From Trichosphaerium sp. ATCC 40318 (Eukaryota > Protista > Tubulinea), in the NCBI GenBank assembly GCA_038496445.1, contig JALMLS010000585.1, positions 1 through 64,000 on the forward strand: a stretch of DNA of 64,000 nucleotides, written 5' to 3'. Under the pieces are notes generated by a model. That model was not told where the DNA came from, did no database searches, and was given only the letters and a program-made list of their open reading frames with translations. Shown here in pieces: positions 1-36,000 of the stretch. The translations under genes and the position numbers were made by a program. How positions within the stretch are numbered: the first letter of the stretch is position 1; each line of letters opens with the position of its first letter.

Positions 1-2255
1 AACTGGTATTCGTTGTTTGTAGAGTTTGTAATACCATTTTAAAGAAAAGTCCAAATGAGGTTTTTTGTTGGGAAGGAAATAAACTATTTTCACCCATTTT
101 CAAGTCTTATTAACCGCAAAGGAAACAGATCGTAGTAACAGCAAAGACTTGCGCAGGTGAATACTATAGCCTATGGGTTATTTTATCCTTTCAGGGTTTT
201 ATGTTTTGTTGTTGGATTCGTAACAAGTATCGTGTTATCATTGGTGTTCTTGGTATACGGCCCGTTGCCTGGTAGGTCACGACAAAAAAAAGTAAAACCA
301 AAAGCTGAGGAGTATAAATGGCCGGATGTGTCTGCGTACAAGCTACCCGCGCGTAAAACAATTCGAGTTAACTGCACGGCACGCTTTTTTTTAACAACAA
401 AAACAACAGTGACGTTCTTTTCGTTGCTAAATTTGCGCACCAGGCCGAATATCCTCCTATAAAACCAGATCTTAGTACATGGGTTGACCCTGAAAATATA
501 TTCCGCTACATTCTTGTTGTTAAAGTCTTTGAGGCCAGAAATCTTGTTGGTTCGGACTTTAACAAGGGTGCTGGCATGGATGGTGGTACGCTCTATTTTA
601 TCGTAGTTGATTTCTAACATGGCCTGGCAGCGAGCTCTGACCCTTATGTGGTTCTGCGTCTTTGTGACAGGGATGTAAAGTCGCGCACTGTAACCAAGAC
701 GTGTAATCTCAGGTACCTAAAACTTGACACGTGCAACTTCACTTGCTACTATTATTGCACTGTATCTTTCTAACGTGTAGTTAGTGGCATCAAACCTTTA
801 TCATGAAAGTAGACAACTCGCAGGAGGATGTATTATTTGTAAGGATATTTGACCAAGACAAGGAACAAGATGACAAACTTGTGCGTTAACCAAAAACCTT
901 TTGTTTTGGGGTGTAGCTTGTCGCTAATGTTAAATTGGATAGGGTAATTGTACAATAAGTTTGTGTGATTTAGAAAAAGGTGTTGAACAAAAAATGTGGG
1001 CACCTCTTAAAGGAAAGACGAGCTTTGTGTACTTTTTGCCAGGTTAACAATCTTTAGGTGTGGCGGAGACATACAAGGGAACTGTGCCAGCCACCGGCGA
1101 AATTGCGTTGAGCTTGACACTTACTGATTACAATGCTACTGTTCCGCTATCTACCTATAAGTGGTTGAAGTGGTTAAAAAAAGCATGGTGTGATTGATAC
1201 TCTTGTAAAGGAGGCACAGCGTGAAGAGAGGAGAAACAAAGAGCTCCAAATGTCACAAGCCAGCGATTTAAGCGTAGGCACATTTTTTTTGTGTTGTGTA
1301 ACTCACTCTTTTTAAACTAGCAATCACGAACTGCTACCACACAGAAACAATATACTACTGTAGTGACTATGCATAAGGGTTCTGTGATAAGGGTTGGTTA
1401 TCAAGGTTCCTCACGTTTCAGGATGAAGATAGCGAGGCGAAGCGATGGTGTGTACTAGAAGGAAGATCTATAAAATGTTTTGCAGATGATACGGTATGGA
1501 GGTGCTATAACGCTGTTTGCGGTAATTTATTGTGGTAACAGGCTTGGGAACCTTCAAAGTGATCGAATTGGATGACTCAATGCGTGCAAAGAAAGTAGCG
1601 AAGCTGATGTTTGTTATTCAAAAGGGAAAATCCAAGAAATATGCTTATGCATTCAAAGTCAGAAAAACTGTCTATCTGGAAACATGGGTCGAGCAAATCA
1701 ACAATGCAAGGAGGTTAACAGAAGGTGATTTGGTATGTGCCGGATTAGTTATTTCAGCTTGTTTTTTTCACAACTAATGATGACTTTCAGCGGCAATTAC
1801 AAGTTGATGTGGATGATGAGGATTCTTCATATGAACCACTTGATAGTCCGTCAGAAAACCGTAGCACTTTAGACAAAGGAGACGCAAGGGTAAGTGGCAC
1901 AACAAACTTTAGTGTGATTGTAACGATATTATAGGTGATGACTTTGACTTTGTAGAAGAGCAATTGGGTGTTGGCATGTCAAGTAATTCTGAGCTTGAAA
2001 GGAAGTGCCTGTGAAGCGATTGCCGGAGTATACACCATGCACTGAACCAACATGGTTGAATAACGTATTGCATCGGTAAGTAGTTTGTTTGTTCCGTGTT
2101 GTTCGATTTACATACTGTTCGTATTTAGCGTGTTTTTGCAGATGGCGTCTCTGGAAGTATTCCACAACTTTATCAAGGTGTCCATTGATCAGTCTTTTGA
2201 ATCTATAACCCCACGTCCTGCATTTTGTATGTTGTCTTAAATATCATAACTGAGC
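1..2255 (+). repeat. Left arm of a ~2.25 kb inverted duplication (partner 4225-6491)
   Basis: Base 1 onward (aactggtattcg...) is the reverse complement of 6491 backward. Identity persists to about 2255/4225. Differences are mostly single-base homopolymer indels in this arm. Confidence 0.95.
173..2212 (+). pseudogene. Truncated, frameshifted inverted copy of the 5' part (TM-C2-PH) of the 2861-6319 gene; probably an assembly/read artefact
   Basis: Same exons as the minus-strand gene but with indels (tcagggttttatg vs tcagggtttatctg; ctataagtgg vs ctataaagtgg). It stops at the start of the SMP domain. Confidence 0.7.
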
Positions 2256-2334
2256 TGCACACCATAATAATACATGCTTGTGCCTAACAGCACAGCCATG
2301 AAAGTAGCAAAATCTAATAAAATCGAAAAAGTAG

Positions 2335-2632
2335 AGGTTTAAGTAACCTTAACCCTAACTTTAATTTGCTTGTAGGGTATAACCCTAATTGTTATTATAA
2401 TCTATTAGGACTAAGGTTTTGGCATGTAATTGGTATCTGTGATTTAGGGCTAGGGTTAGGTTTACAGCCCTAATGGCAGATCAGATTTATTTTTTAATTG
2501 TTGATTGAGGTTAGGGTTTAGGGTTTATTGCTGCTTTTAGAGCTATGAGTTAGGACTAGGGTTACAACCCTATGTACTTTGAGCACTGCTTTAGGGTTAG
2601 GGTTGGTTTAGTTTGGATGGCTGCCTTTTACC
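2335..2632. repeat. Degenerate telomere-like (TTAGGG/CCCTAA) low-complexity tract
   Basis: Scattered aaccctaa, ttagggctagggttagg, ttagggtttagggttt and ttagggttagggtt units in both orientations, followed by AT-rich filler to about 2860. Confidence 0.6.
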
Positions 2633-2860
2633 TTTTTTTGTAGTTTAAGGCTTGGTGTTCCTTATTGTTAATTATTTTTAATCACTTTCTATTTTTCTAT
2701 TTTTTAGGCTAATATTGGTTTTATTAACAAGTATTGTTATCATACTGTTCACAAATACATGGCAGCAATGTTAAATTAATTGATAAGTTTTTGTAAACAA
2801 AAAACAAATTAACATATTATCATTGTTGTTTCAAATTACTTGTTACACAAAATACAAAGT

Positions 2861-5800
2861 TTAGTTTAATAGTTTGTACAAGGATCGTGGATTAATAAAA
2901 TTCCAGAATTCAGTTACATTTTGATTACTTTTGTCAAATTTTAACATTACAACACCATGTAGAATACGCTCTACACCAGATGGCTGATAATCCCACAAAG
3001 GCCCTTATTTAAAACAGTTAGTTCCTTACTTGCACACCAGAGTGACTTACGTTTATGTGTGCCCTTGGCAACATAACGTGCTGTTATACAGTAACTCTGC
3101 CATGCAACCTCATCTGCAATTGTGAAGCTAAGGTCGGGGAATGCAGTGCGCAACTCTACTACAAACTTCTTTATAGCTGCTCGACCATGAAGTATAACAT
3201 TAATAGGTAGTACACCATGTACATTACACTCTTCAAGGAATAACTCATCAATGACTGTAAAACAAACAAATTTAGCACTAACACAAACACAGCGGCAGCT
3301 AAGCTACCAACTCTAGTACTTACTTTCGAGATCGCCAAGGTTAACCGCCCTTGATATGAACATCTTTAAATGATACTTACGGGCAATAGCATCAGGCGTA
3401 TCTTGTCGTATCTTATCCTCAGGTATTGGAGCGTCTTTTAATTTAGGCATCTCTGGTTTTTTTACGGCCGCTGAAGACGATGTAGCCAACTGCCCAGACG
3501 AAGCGCTTGACAGCTGGCGCCTAGAAGCTTCTTTTGTTTGTGTGATTGCCCTTGTTGGTTTGTGGCCCTATTTATGTAAACGTTAACATTTACCTACATT
3601 TCATTGTTACAAGAAAAACTTACCTCCATAATTTCAACCTCAGGTGCAATACCTGGGAATGGTATGTACATGCGTATACCCTTAGGATATACCAAGTAAT
3701 CATTTACAACCTTTGTAAGGATTCTACGAACACACTGTGAGTTCGGCCATTACTTAGAAACAATGTACCTGTGCAAGAGGCTCTTGAATTGAGGAAGCCT
3801 CCGACCACCTGCAGTTATTTCTACATTAAGATCAAACTCAGGTTTACGGACTAATCGCATTTCCCATTTTCCATTAATATCCTCAGGCATGAGTATATGA
3901 AGCTACATGTATCTCAACAATGTGAAGCAATGTCAAAGCAAATAGTAAAACGTTTATGAAAAAAAGAAAAAAAAAGGAATTGTAACGTACTGTGCCAACC
4001 AAACTCTTAACTGTAACAGTTGCAACTACCTTTAATCGACGTGCACGAAGCTTTAATACAATAGACAATACAGCGCTTAAGCTGCCTCTATAGTCTATAT
4101 CTGTTTCAACTACAAGTTCACCGGTTTGTAGGTAGTCTGCTTTCGTATTTTTAAGCGAAAATATCTTGGTTCCCCAATTGAATTCCAGAATATGCATCTC
4201 TCCCTACACCGGCAGTTAGTTATGCTCTAGTTATGACATTTAAGACAACATACAAGAATAGCAGGACGTGGGGTTATAGATTCAAAAGACTGATCAATGG
4301 ACACCTTGATAAAGTTGTGGAATACTTCCAGAGACGCCATCTGCAAAAACACGCTAAATACGAACAGTATGTAAATCGAACAACACGGAACAAACAAACT
4401 ACTTACCGATGCAATACGTTATTCAACCATGTTGGTTCAGTGCATGGTGTATACTCCGGCAATCGCTTCACAGGCACTTCCTTTTCAAGCTCAGAATTAC
4501 TTGACATGCCAACACCCAATTGCTCTTCTACAAAGTCAAAGTCATCACCCTATAATATCGTTACAATCACACTAAAGTTTGTTGTGCCACTTACCCTTGC
4601 GTCTCCTTTGTCTAAAGTGCTACGGTTTTCTGACGGACTATCAAGTGGTTCATATGAAGAATCCTCATCATCCACATCAACTTGTAATTGCCGCTGAAAG
4701 TCATCATTAGTTGTGAAAAAAAACAAGCTGAAATAACTGTTCCGGCACATACCAAATCAGCTTCTGTTAACCTCCTTGCATTGTTGATTTGCTCGACCCA
4801 TGTTTCCAGATAGACAGTTTTTCTGACTTTGAATGCATAAGCATATTTCTTGGATTTTCCCTTTTGAATAACAAACATCAGCTTCGCTACTTTCTTTGCA
4901 CGCATTGAGTCATCCAATTCGATCACTTTGAAGGGTTCCCAAGCCTGTTACCACAATAAATTACCGCAAACAGCGTTATAGCACCTCCATACCGTATCAT
5001 CTGCAAAACATTTTATAGATCTTCCTTCTAGTACACACCATCGCTTCGCCTCGCTATCTTCATCCTGAAACGTGAGGAACCCTTGATAACCAACCCTTAT
5101 CACAGAACCCTTATGCATAGTCACTACAGTAGTATATTGTTTCTGTGTGGTAGCAGTTCGTGATTGCTAGTTTAAAAAGAGTGAGTTACACAACACAAAA
5201 AAAAATGTGCCTACGCTTAAATCGCTGGCTTGTGACATTTGGAGCTCTTTGTTTCTCCTCTCTTCACGCTGTGCCTCCTTTACAAGAGTATCAATCACAC
5301 CATGCTTTTTTTTAACCACTTCAACCACTTTATAGGTAGATAGCGGAACAGTAGCATTGTAATCAGTAAGTGTCAAGCTCAACGCAATTTCGCCGGTGGC
5401 TGGCACAGTTCCCTTGTATGTCTCCGCCACACCTAAAGATTGTTAACCTGGCAAAAAGTACACAAAGCTCGTCTTTCCTTTAAGAGGTGCCCACATTTTT
5501 TGTTCAACACCTTTTTCTAAATCACACAAACTTATTGTACAATTACCCTATCCAATTTAACATTAGCGACAAGCTACACCCCAAAACAAAAGGTTTTTGG
5601 TTAACGCACAAGTTTGTCATCTTGTTCCTTGTCTTGGTCAAATATCCTTACAAATAATACATCCTCCTGCGAGTTGTCTACTTTCATGATAAAGGTTTGA
5701 TGCCACTAACTACACGTTAGAAAGATACAGTGCAATAATAGTAGCAAGTGAAGTTGCACGTGTCAAGTTTTAGGTACCTGAGGATTACACGTCTTGGTTA

Positions 5801-6319
5801 CAGTGCGCGACTTTACATCCCTGTCACAAAGACGCAGAACCACATAAGGGTCAGAGCTCGCTGCCAGGCCATGTTAGAAATCAACTACGATAAAATAGAG
5901 CGTACCACCATCCATGCCAGCACCCTTGTTAAAGTCCGAACCAACAAGATTTCTGGCCTCAAAGACTTTAACAACAAGAATGTAGCGGAATATATTTTCA
6001 GGGTCAACCCATGTACTAAGATCTGGTTTTATAGGAGGATATTCGGCCTGGTGCGCAAATTTAGCAACGAAAAGAACGTCACTGTTGTTTTTGTTGTTAA
6101 AAAAAAGCGTGCCGTGCAGTTAACTCGAATTGTTTTACGCGCGGGTAGCTTGTACGCAGACACATCCGGCCATTTATACTCCTCAGCTTTTGGTTTTACT
6201 TTTTTTTGTCGTGACCTACCAGGCAACGGGCCGTATACCAAGAACACCAATGATAACACGATACTTGTTACGAATCCAACAACAAAACAGATAAACCCTG
6301 AAAGGATAAAATAACCCAT
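2861..6319 (-). CDS. Multi-exon membrane-anchored protein: N-terminal TM, C2, PH, SMP (TULIP lipid-transfer) and C-terminal SnoaL/NTF2-like domain
   Basis: TM: FICFVVGFVTSIVLSLVFLVY. C2: VKVFEARNL..SSDPYVVL..KSRTVTKTCNP.W.QTF..VRIFDQD..DDKLG. PH: KRWCVLEGRSIKCF..YAFK..ETWVEQINNA. SMP: EPTWLNNVLHR..HILEFNWG..DIDYRGSL..VTVKSLVG..KPEFDL..YLVYPK. SnoaL: HGRAAIKKFVVELRTAFPDLSFTIADEV..ARYVAKGTHK..PSG. Start codon is uncertain. Confidence 0.75.
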
Positions 6320-6491
6320 AGGCTATAGTATTCACCTGCGCAAGTCTTTGCTGTTACTACGATCTGTTTCCTTTGCGGTTAATAAGACTTGAAAATGGGT
6401 GAAAATAGTTTATTTCCTTCCCAACAAAAAACCTCATTTGGACTTTTCTTTAAAATGGTATTACAAACTCTACAAACAACGAATACCAGTT
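4225..6491 (-). repeat. Right arm of the inverted duplication (intact copy)
   Basis: Reverse complement of 1-2255, with reading frames intact. Confidence 0.95.
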
Positions 6492-24105: not shown

Positions 24106-26119
<2,014 letters not shown>

Positions 26120-28488: not shown

Positions 28489-32390
<3,902 letters not shown>

Positions 32391-35017: not shown

Positions 35018-35286
35018 GTTAAGATTTGTCATGTTTACAATTTCTTGTACATTGTTGCTTTGAAAACTGAAATGATACGAACAATAAAACATTTCGTCTA
35101 CAAAGGTCTTTATACTACTAGCACTATCACGTGATCAAAAGCGTGTCCAATAAATAACTACTCCTAACAGCCCATTAAATAACGACAGGCAGAGATAGGG
35201 TTAAGCAAGGCAGTCAGAGATTGCTTTCAGAGAAACTTATGTTAAGTAATTGTCTTGTCCTAAAAACAGCAACACAAACAACACAA

Positions 35287-36000
35287 ATGTCACTTGCAAG
35301 CTTACCAGCAGAGCTATTAGTAGACATACTTAGCCTTGTAAAAAAAAGGGGTCCTGCAACACAATCGTGTGCAGCCTTGGCAAATATCGTCCACAACTTC
35401 ATCGGATACACAGGAACAATAACCATACCTTCAAACGAGGCTTGCCGTTACATTGGCCAATTTTTAGGCATATTGCGGAATACGCGCATACAAGTCGGTT
35501 ATCAAGTTACAGACGTAGGTATTAAGCATTTGGCGGGCGTTCAGCATATTGATCTAGCTGCAAAGGATGTTACAGACGTTGGCGTCAGTGCTCTTGCAGG
35601 AGTAAAACATATCAACTTAAATTGGTGCAAAATGGTGACAGATGAAGGGTTAAAGCGTCTAGCAGGTGTACAATCTATTTCGTTGTATGCAAATGAACAA
35701 TTTACAGACGAAGGCATTAAAGCTTTAGTTGGCGCTCGTGCGATTAGTCTATCATGCACATCCGCCGGAGATGACAGTGTCGTGCCTCTAATCGAAGCAG
35801 GCGTGAGAGATATTGATTTGAGCTGGACGAAGATTACTGATCTTACACTAAAAGCGCTTGTGGCTAACAAAGTGCGTGCTAATATATCTGGTTGTCAAGG
35901 TGTATCCGAAAACGCCAGACAATTTTTCACTTATGAATGGGATTACTCCGTTCTCGGGATTATCAATTTCCATTTAAGAGATGCACCTGAATTCCGGTAA
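35287..36000 (+). CDS. Intronless F-box-like plus leucine-rich-repeat (cysteine-containing LRR) protein
   Basis: MSLASLPAELLVDIL, then ~22-aa repeats VTDVGIKHLAGVQHIDL, VTDVGVSALAGVKHINLNWC, VTDEGLKRLAGVQSISL. Confidence 0.85.
   Translation: MSLASLPAELLVDILSLVKKRGPATQSCAALANIVHNFIGYTGTITIPSNEACRYIGQFLGILRNTRIQVGYQVTDVGIKHLAGVQHIDLAAKDVTDVGVSALAGVKHINLNWCKMVTDEGLKRLAGVQSISLYANEQFTDEGIKALVGARAISLSCTSAGDDSVVPLIEAGVRDIDLSWTKITDLTLKALVANKVRANISGCQGVSENARQFFTYEWDYSVLGIINFHLRDAPEFR

Follow-up and report, generated by a model that had tools for sequence, protein, structure and literature searches.

A predicted membrane-anchored C2-PH-SMP protein ending in a SnoaL-like domain in Trichosphaerium and Balamuthia

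The locus at positions 2861-6319 of contig JALMLS010000585.1 from Trichosphaerium sp. ATCC 40318 raises the question of whether one gene joins an SMP lipid-transfer tether to a SnoaL-like domain. The sequence examined, here called the window, covers the initial 64 kb of this contig; the whole assembly comprises 70.3 Mb in 642 contigs. A first-pass annotation, made from the sequence alone, had proposed that exons splice in frame from a transmembrane anchor through C2, PH, and SMP-like segments into a SnoaL-like domain, and had read the product as a contact-site lipid-transfer protein with a second ligand-binding or catalytic pocket. For the searches, exons of the window were queried singly, and the longer queries were the transcript-derived database proteins P0001 and P0080. 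The reading at which we arrived, and which we regard as likely, is that the gene is genuine and transcribed and encodes a protein of ~849 residues with the order anchor-C2-PH-SMP-linker-SnoaL. Under this reading, the protein most likely acts in the manner of Tex2/Nvj2 and the extended synaptotagmins (E-Syts), its SnoaL-like domain is probably non-catalytic, and the fusion is old.

The gene lies on the minus strand, from an ATG at 6319 to a stop codon at 2863-2861. The coding model consists of 17 exons with 2550 nt that encode 849 amino acids and the stop; a check of frame and phase found no internal stop codons and only sense codons among those split by introns. Exons 1-6 (6319-6125, 6047-5906, 5860-5778, 5705-5610, 5547-5478, and 5432-5215) are collinear with an orthologue on the metagenome contig L011 described below, and cDNA L013 supports exons 7-12 (5166-4993, 4944-4753, 4693-4595, 4549-4407, 4353-4254, and 4203-3991) and exons 13-17 (3902-3769, 3723-3624, 3567-3324, 3254-3051, and 3003-2861). 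The introns are 45-88 nt long and carry GT..AG ends in all cases but intron 5. The junction of exons 1 and 2 was set to 6125|6047 by comparison with L011, after which an alternative junction at 6156|6081 was dropped. A search of the assembly found a single copy of the gene. The span 2861-6319 given in the first-pass annotation proved exact, the peptides cited there are present in the translation, and the proposed in-frame joining of exons from the anchor to the SnoaL-like domain is borne out by the 17-exon model.

Transcript evidence for the fusion was obtained with the SnoaL core exon (67 residues; 3052-3252, minus strand), which was searched against 1.84 billion representative proteins. The best match, P0001, is a 100% identical 510-residue open reading frame (ORF) of an MMETSP transcript, and its 90% cluster includes P0080, a 560-residue protein from the JGI transcript contig L013 (1691 nt). 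This contig, which corresponds to both proteins, is ~99.7% identical to the gene at the DNA level. It aligns in 11 blocks (5105-4993, 4944-4753, 4693-4595, 4549-4407, 4353-4254, 4203-3991, 3902-3769, 3723-3624, 3567-3324, 3254-3051, and 3003-2855) that represent exons 7-17; the exact-match blocks contain five single-base mismatches and leave out two short stretches close to where exons 10 and 11 start. The junctions in L013 include 3624|3567, which leads from the end of the SMP domain into the linker, as well as 3324|3254 and 3051|3003 within the SnoaL domain, the last of which uses an AAG acceptor. Because L013 spans exons 7-17, a single mRNA encodes the PH domain, the SMP domain, the linker, and the SnoaL domain in one frame. 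It thus supplies the single transcript joining the SMP and SnoaL exons on which the initial proposal depended, and it contradicts the notion of transcripts ending before ~3450. The MMETSP ORF P0001 begins at an internal methionine, probably because the MMETSP contig retains the in-frame stop of intron 7.

The second-best match of the SnoaL exon (P0002) is a 117-residue fragment with 79% identity on L011, a 397-kb ENA metagenome contig of a related amoeba. The region L011:7015-10563 encodes a collinear orthologue with all 17 exons in order and introns at matching positions; the identity per exon ranges from 30 to 83%, and the intron sequences are unconserved. The L011 homologue of intron 15 (L011:10087-10142) has an apparent GC donor (G|GCATGA ... 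CCTTAG), an in-frame GT being unavailable.

A more distant match, P0056, is a 1343-residue protein of Balamuthia mandrillaris (KAL6057908.1) with a hydrophobic N-terminal segment and Pfam matches to C2 (77.7 bits), PH (64.2 bits, in two stretches), MMM1-type SMP (PF10296; 25.5 bits at a cut-off of 21.9), and SnoaL (58.8 bits). P0001 and P0056 align collinearly over the SMP domain, linker, and SnoaL domain (E 4e-37), and the C2 and post-C2 exons of the window align with residues 316-486 of P0056. An uninterrupted Balamuthia exon (L012:5921-6442, residues 1053-1226) encodes the C-terminal half of the SMP domain, the linker, and the first SnoaL helix. Because this one exon spans from SMP into SnoaL, the fusion is encoded without splicing ambiguity in a second, distant species. 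At its source, the Balamuthia gene (L012:2001-6857) carries the label 'putative E3 ubiquitin-protein ligase RING1a isoform B'. Pfam gave no match to a RING domain in P0056, and this label looks wrong, C2, two PH stretches, SMP, and SnoaL having scored instead.

At the N-terminus, the predicted membrane anchor (6227..6316, residues ~2-31) is a hydrophobic segment with 19-residue Kyte-Doolittle means of 1.9-2.8 (maximum 2.76); it is followed by a basic stretch and is 55% identical in L011. The C2 domain (5478..6010, exons 2-5) was recognized on two adjoining halves of the PF00168 profile, positions 20-49 in exon 3 (20.2 bits, E 6.9e-4) and 50-81 in exon 4 (18.2 bits, E 2.9e-3), each of which separately falls below the cut-off of 22 bits. 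The region is collinear with the C2 domain of P0056, and its translation contains Asp-rich loops, as typical for Ca2+-binding C2 domains, which suggests that it may bind Ca2+. Exon 6 (5215..5432) encodes a conserved post-C2 segment and then a charged coiled stretch; it is 38% identical to residues 419-486 of P0056 (E 4e-7) and 49% identical to L011. The putative PH domain (4780..5088, exons 7-8) lies in residues 1-110 of P0080 and occupies the same chain position as the PH domains of P0056. Its match to PF00169 is nearly complete (profile positions 3-102 of 105, E 1.1e-4) but scores 23.0 bits at a cut-off of 25.1, and the single-exon Pfam scan gave a faint hint at most. Of the N-terminal segments in the first-pass annotation, the transmembrane and C2 ones are thus upheld, whereas the PH segment is matched in extent and falls short in score.

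The SMP domain, a lipid-transfer domain of the TULIP fold, is encoded by exons 10-14 (3624..4480). A profile of this region (A1) built from three species, with the window protein, the L011 exons, and P0056, matched Mmm1 in the PDB (5yk6; E 7.2e-6, 180 profile positions aligned) and, weakly, E-Syt2 (4p42; E 0.38). Precomputed Pfam assignments place PF26547 (PDZD8_N) on both P0001 and P0080, in addition to the above-threshold PF10296 match in the Balamuthia homologue. When the SMP exons were scanned singly, no Pfam match was obtained, and a phmmer search of exon 12 against the PDB returned nothing useful. An AlphaFold2 (AF2) model of the domain, computed from a shallow alignment with a predicted local distance difference test score (pLDDT) of 62, consists of a helix-helix element, long strands, and then a helix. 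The seven best Foldseek matches of this model are to Mmm1, Mdm12, and E-Syt2, followed by TMEM24, Der p 7, and BPI (best E 8.5e-7), so that the top matches are all TULIP folds and the SMP-like segment originally suspected is identified by both profile and fold.

Downstream of the SMP domain, exon 15 encodes a Ser/Thr/Lys-rich linker (3361..3567) and continues into the first SnoaL helix; the linker keeps an open frame in L011 and is poorly conserved in sequence. The SnoaL-like domain, of the NTF2 fold, occupies the end of exon 15 and exons 16 and 17 (2864..3360). P0001 matches PF07366 with 46.9 bits (profile positions 6-118, cut-off 28.4), and exon 16 alone does so with 29.5 bits. A phmmer search of exon 16 alone against the PDB returned nothing useful; the SnoaL family profile matches many SnoaL-like PDB entries, including SnoaL itself (1sjw). 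The AF2 model of the domain (pLDDT 89; predicted TM-score, pTM, 0.81) is an alpha+beta cone that superposes on the SnoaL-like cyclases, with Foldseek TM-scores of 0.78-0.85 to IdmH, AclR, SnoaL2, and 3kkg. A SnoaL-like/NTF2 domain at the C-terminus, as first annotated, is therefore confirmed in both profile and model.

What this domain does is a separate matter. In SnoaL, Asp121 is the acid/base, and His107, His119, Gln105, and Asn33 are essential; the IdmH equivalents of the SnoaL catalytic residues are His129, Thr131, and Asn117 (PMC6830212). In the HMMER alignment, E-H-W-T of IdmH stands against E-F-W-N in the window protein, and Asn117 of IdmH against Lys. Mapped through IdmH, in a pairwise alignment that is weak and has the E-x-W motif as its anchor, the SnoaL residues His119, Asp121, and His107 correspond to Phe, Asn, and Lys in the window protein. 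In L011, Ala is found where Asp121 aligns, and Balamuthia differs again at the catalytic positions. The G-x-PPTG loop usual in the SnoaL family is W-D/G-Y-x-P in the fused proteins, in which the Cys of DELFxxEC and the Thr of GTH/GTN are invariant polar residues (the His of GTH being replaced by Asn in Balamuthia). Between the window and L011, the core exon of SnoaL shows 79% identity, a value exceeded by one SMP exon alone (83%). Since the catalytic Asp and His residues are replaced, a binding or oligomerizing role is favoured over cyclase chemistry, and the domain is probably a conserved, non-catalytic pocket or interface. An active enzyme (for example, a cyclase, hydrolase, or isomerase) that receives a lipid or a sterol-like compound from the SMP domain as its substrate, so that transfer is coupled to modification, would be in keeping with a fold and family rich in enzymes (SnoaL, AknH, ketosteroid isomerase, epoxide hydrolases, and Trt14), with the strong conservation of the domain between the two close species, and with the invariant polar residues. 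However, the substitutions at the acid/base positions, which differ from one fused protein to the next, make this an unlikely account. Of the second ligand-binding or catalytic pocket put forward in the first pass, the pocket fold thus stands (TM-score ~0.8), and its catalytic version is weakened. Phospholipid carriers of prokaryotes place the NTF2 fold in a published table of folds used for lipid transfer (PMC5486777), which makes a lipid-like ligand for the SnoaL-like domain plausible by analogy.

Taken with what is known of the domain families, this architecture suggests a possible mode of action. The N-terminal hydrophobic anchor would hold the protein in the endoplasmic reticulum, and the C2 and PH domains may bind acidic lipids or phosphoinositides of the partner membrane. 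The SMP domain would dimerize and shuttle glycerolipids or ceramide across the gap. The SnoaL-like cone may serve as a non-catalytic second pocket for a hydrophobic ligand (a sensor, a hand-over site, or a presenting site) or as an additional oligomerization interface. Lipid binding and transfer by the SMP domain and a location at contact sites would thus be expected by analogy. The evidence supports the architecture of the contact-site lipid-transfer protein with an extra pocket domain envisaged at the outset, and suggests its function.

Several observations weigh against this reading of the gene. Confidence in the SMP model is low (pLDDT 62, TM-score ~0.4), the PH match lies below its cut-off, and the assignment of catalytic residues depends on a weak alignment. 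Among the transcript matches, none covered exons 1-6, which encode the transmembrane and C2 segments, and both transcript ORFs (P0001 and P0080) start downstream of exon 6; the attachment of these segments to the rest of the protein is suggested by comparison with L011 and P0056. Finally, intron 5 (5433..5477, 45 nt) has GA..AG ends in place of GT..AG, and a GA donor normally blocks splicing. If the intron is retained, translation stops behind the C2 domain at an in-frame TAA (5445-5443), and the allele as assembled might yield a truncated protein only, or none. The homologous L011 intron starts with GTAAGT in the same codon phase. A U12-type intron was rejected because the RTATCC donor is absent, and alternative donors at 5511 and 5466 were rejected, as their use would remove conserved strands of the C2 domain or alter the reading frame. 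The GA may reflect an erroneous base, an odd donor that splicing tolerates, or a mutation that disables the gene.

The end of the contig bears on the last of these. Positions 1..2221 (plus strand) hold an inverted partial copy of 4261-6491 that is of lower quality and contains the 5' half of the gene up to exon 11; ragged similarity extends ~40 nt beyond 2221, to about 2262. The two arms show 14 differences. In 10 of these, the left arm lacks a single nucleotide within a run of one base (a short run in two cases), and the sequence of cDNA L013 is that of the right arm. Two origins of the left arm are considered, an assembly end that is under-polished or chimeric and an inverted duplicate that has decayed. 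A simple fold-back artefact was rejected, as 2 kb separate the arms. The copy is not part of the functional gene, which it leaves unaffected, and the junction of exons 11 and 12 is confirmed by cDNA. Between the copy and the gene, positions 2240..2640 consist of telomere-like degenerate TTAGGG/TTTAGGG repeats in both orientations. The first ~235 nt of this stretch belong to a dispersed ~120-bp family with 80-94% identity that occurs on dozens of contigs, often less than 1 kb from the end, and is probably a subtelomeric repeat family. Because the stretch is telomere-like and is in part a repeat found near many contig ends, the gene is probably subtelomeric. The low-quality region that the first-pass annotation had placed directly beside the last exon is thus a dispersed telomere-like repeat, the poor sequence being confined to 1-2221.

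With this setting, the assembled copy could be a chromosome-end allele that has been disabled, or a pseudogene of recent origin, in which the GA donor prevents the full-length anchored protein from being made and leaves a soluble PH-SMP-SnoaL product at most, or nothing. The contrast of the GA donor with GTAAGT in the orthologue, the position of the gene ~250 nt from telomere-like repeats and beside a partial inverted duplicate, and the downstream starts of both transcript ORFs are as such an allele would have them. However, the 17 exons are free of frameshifts and stops and intact in all other respects, and the locus is transcribed and correctly spliced downstream. The GA may also be an assembly base error or a tolerated donor, given the apparent GC donor of intron 15 in L011, and the transcript contigs may be 5'-truncated. 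We therefore consider a disabled copy improbable, and retain the intact, anchored protein as the preferred reading. The remaining alternative, two adjacent genes, one for an SMP protein with its end near 3594 and one for a separate SnoaL protein that begins at an ATG near 3450, could draw on the frame stops at 3596-3594 met when intron 14 is left unspliced and on an in-frame Met in exon 15, but is refuted at the mRNA level by the splicing of 3624|3567 in L013, which reads through as one 560-residue ORF, and is opposed by the intron position and open exon 15 kept in L011 (with Met positions unconserved) and by the Balamuthia exon that spans both domains, so that proteolytic separation after translation is its sole remaining form and its probability is very slight.

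The neighbouring genes in the window are unrelated. Long ORFs at 25406-26116 and 35221-35997 (both plus strand) encode a protein-tyrosine-phosphatase domain and leucine-rich repeats (LRR_6). A 749-codon ORF at 29688-31934 (minus strand) encodes the S1 and DEAH-helicase part of DHX8/PRP22 and is 53-59% identical to the best database proteins, with animals and fungi alike at the top. Because the identity of this helicase is only 53-59%, the window organism is without a close sequenced relative in the protein collection searched.

We further asked how widely the architecture is distributed. Among 60 significant matches of the SnoaL exon, the SMP-linked ones were P0001 (the product of the gene itself), the L011 fragment, and P0056; the remainder were single or tandem SnoaL proteins, some with CBS or LysM domains. 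Other long SnoaL matches were rejected as instances of the same architecture, being tandem SnoaL repeats, CBS/LysM fusions, or low-complexity proteins with SMP in none of them. The two best non-fused matches lie in dense, same-strand gene rows of bacterial appearance. The closest non-fused relative is found in a row of four SnoaL-type genes (L014:169-7009), together with a GMC oxidoreductase, DJ-1/PfpI, and a glyoxalase.

In a tree of 127 SnoaL domains (mafft and FastTree, LG+gamma; P0080 and the L011 exon pieces left out), the window and Balamuthia domains are sister tips with a support of 0.87. Both tips are on long branches, which makes long-branch attraction possible and counts among the points against the reading given above. 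The fusion is nevertheless taken to be old and is shared by Balamuthia and the window organism. Word searches with P0056 (region 940-1343) and P0001 for further family members returned the queries alone, and metagenome scans with exon 6 and a two-species SMP-SnoaL alignment gave no further relatives. No paper in the literature searched combines 'SMP domain' and 'SnoaL', and the single one there to mention 'NTF2-like' is a general review, so that the lack of a described protein with this architecture, noted in the first pass, holds for that literature. The architecture is already in public databases, unrecognized, as the misnamed Balamuthia protein and an MMETSP transcript.

To our knowledge, the accessory domains described for SMP tethers are membrane- or protein-targeting modules, namely C2, PH, PDZ, and C1 domains and coiled coils. 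The conserved C-terminal NTF2/SnoaL cone would add a second hydrophobic pocket to such a tether, and the family would offer a natural test of whether a lipid shuttle can be coupled to ligand sensing or hand-over. It would also represent the recruitment of a bacterial-type small-molecule-binding fold into the contact-site machinery of amoebae, and the RING1a ubiquitin-ligase label of the Balamuthia protein can now be corrected. More tentatively, the SnoaL cone and the SMP domain might work together, the cone sensing or converting a specific hydrophobic molecule (a sterol, a ceramide, or a quinone-like compound) and thereby gating lipid transfer at an amoebozoan contact site or coupling it to chemistry; we consider this a speculative idea with a low chance of being right. 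If true, it would make this protein the first SMP tether to carry a second lipid pocket of its own, present in the pathogen Balamuthia and with no human counterpart.

Compared with known systems, the predicted protein is an SMP tether resembling Tex2/Nvj2 that additionally contains a C2 domain and, at its C-terminus, a conserved SnoaL-like domain. In the portion available of a 2024 review of SMP proteins, the E-Syts are given as anchor-SMP-C2s and Tex2/Nvj2 as transmembrane-PH-SMP proteins, and no extra SnoaL-like domain is mentioned (PMC11320393). The likeness to Tex2/Nvj2 lies in the order of anchor, putative PH domain, and SMP and in the Mmm1/PDZD8-like Pfam type of the SMP domain (MMM1, PDZD8_N). 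In contrast to Tex2/Nvj2, a C2 domain stands between anchor and PH, the SMP domain is followed by the linker and SnoaL and so is not C-terminal, and one anchor helix rather than two is predicted. With the extended synaptotagmins and tricalbins (hairpin anchor, SMP, and C2 repeats), the protein shares an anchor, an SMP domain, and a C2 domain in one chain, together with a fold match and a weak profile match to E-Syt2 (4p42); it differs from them in its single C2 domain, which precedes SMP with none after it, in its putative PH domain, and in its C-terminal SnoaL domain. The latter resembles the SnoaL-like polyketide cyclases or 'ester cyclases' of PF07366 (IdmH, 6hnn; AclR, 2gey; SnoaL, 1sjw) in its above-threshold Pfam score and TM-score of ~0.8, whereas its fusion to a eukaryotic membrane tether and the replaced catalytic Asp and His set it apart. 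As a functional analogy only, an NTF2-type cone that may hold lipid in its pocket recalls the MlaC-type phospholipid carriers of bacteria (PMC5486777), although MlaC, unlike the window protein, is a soluble periplasmic protein.

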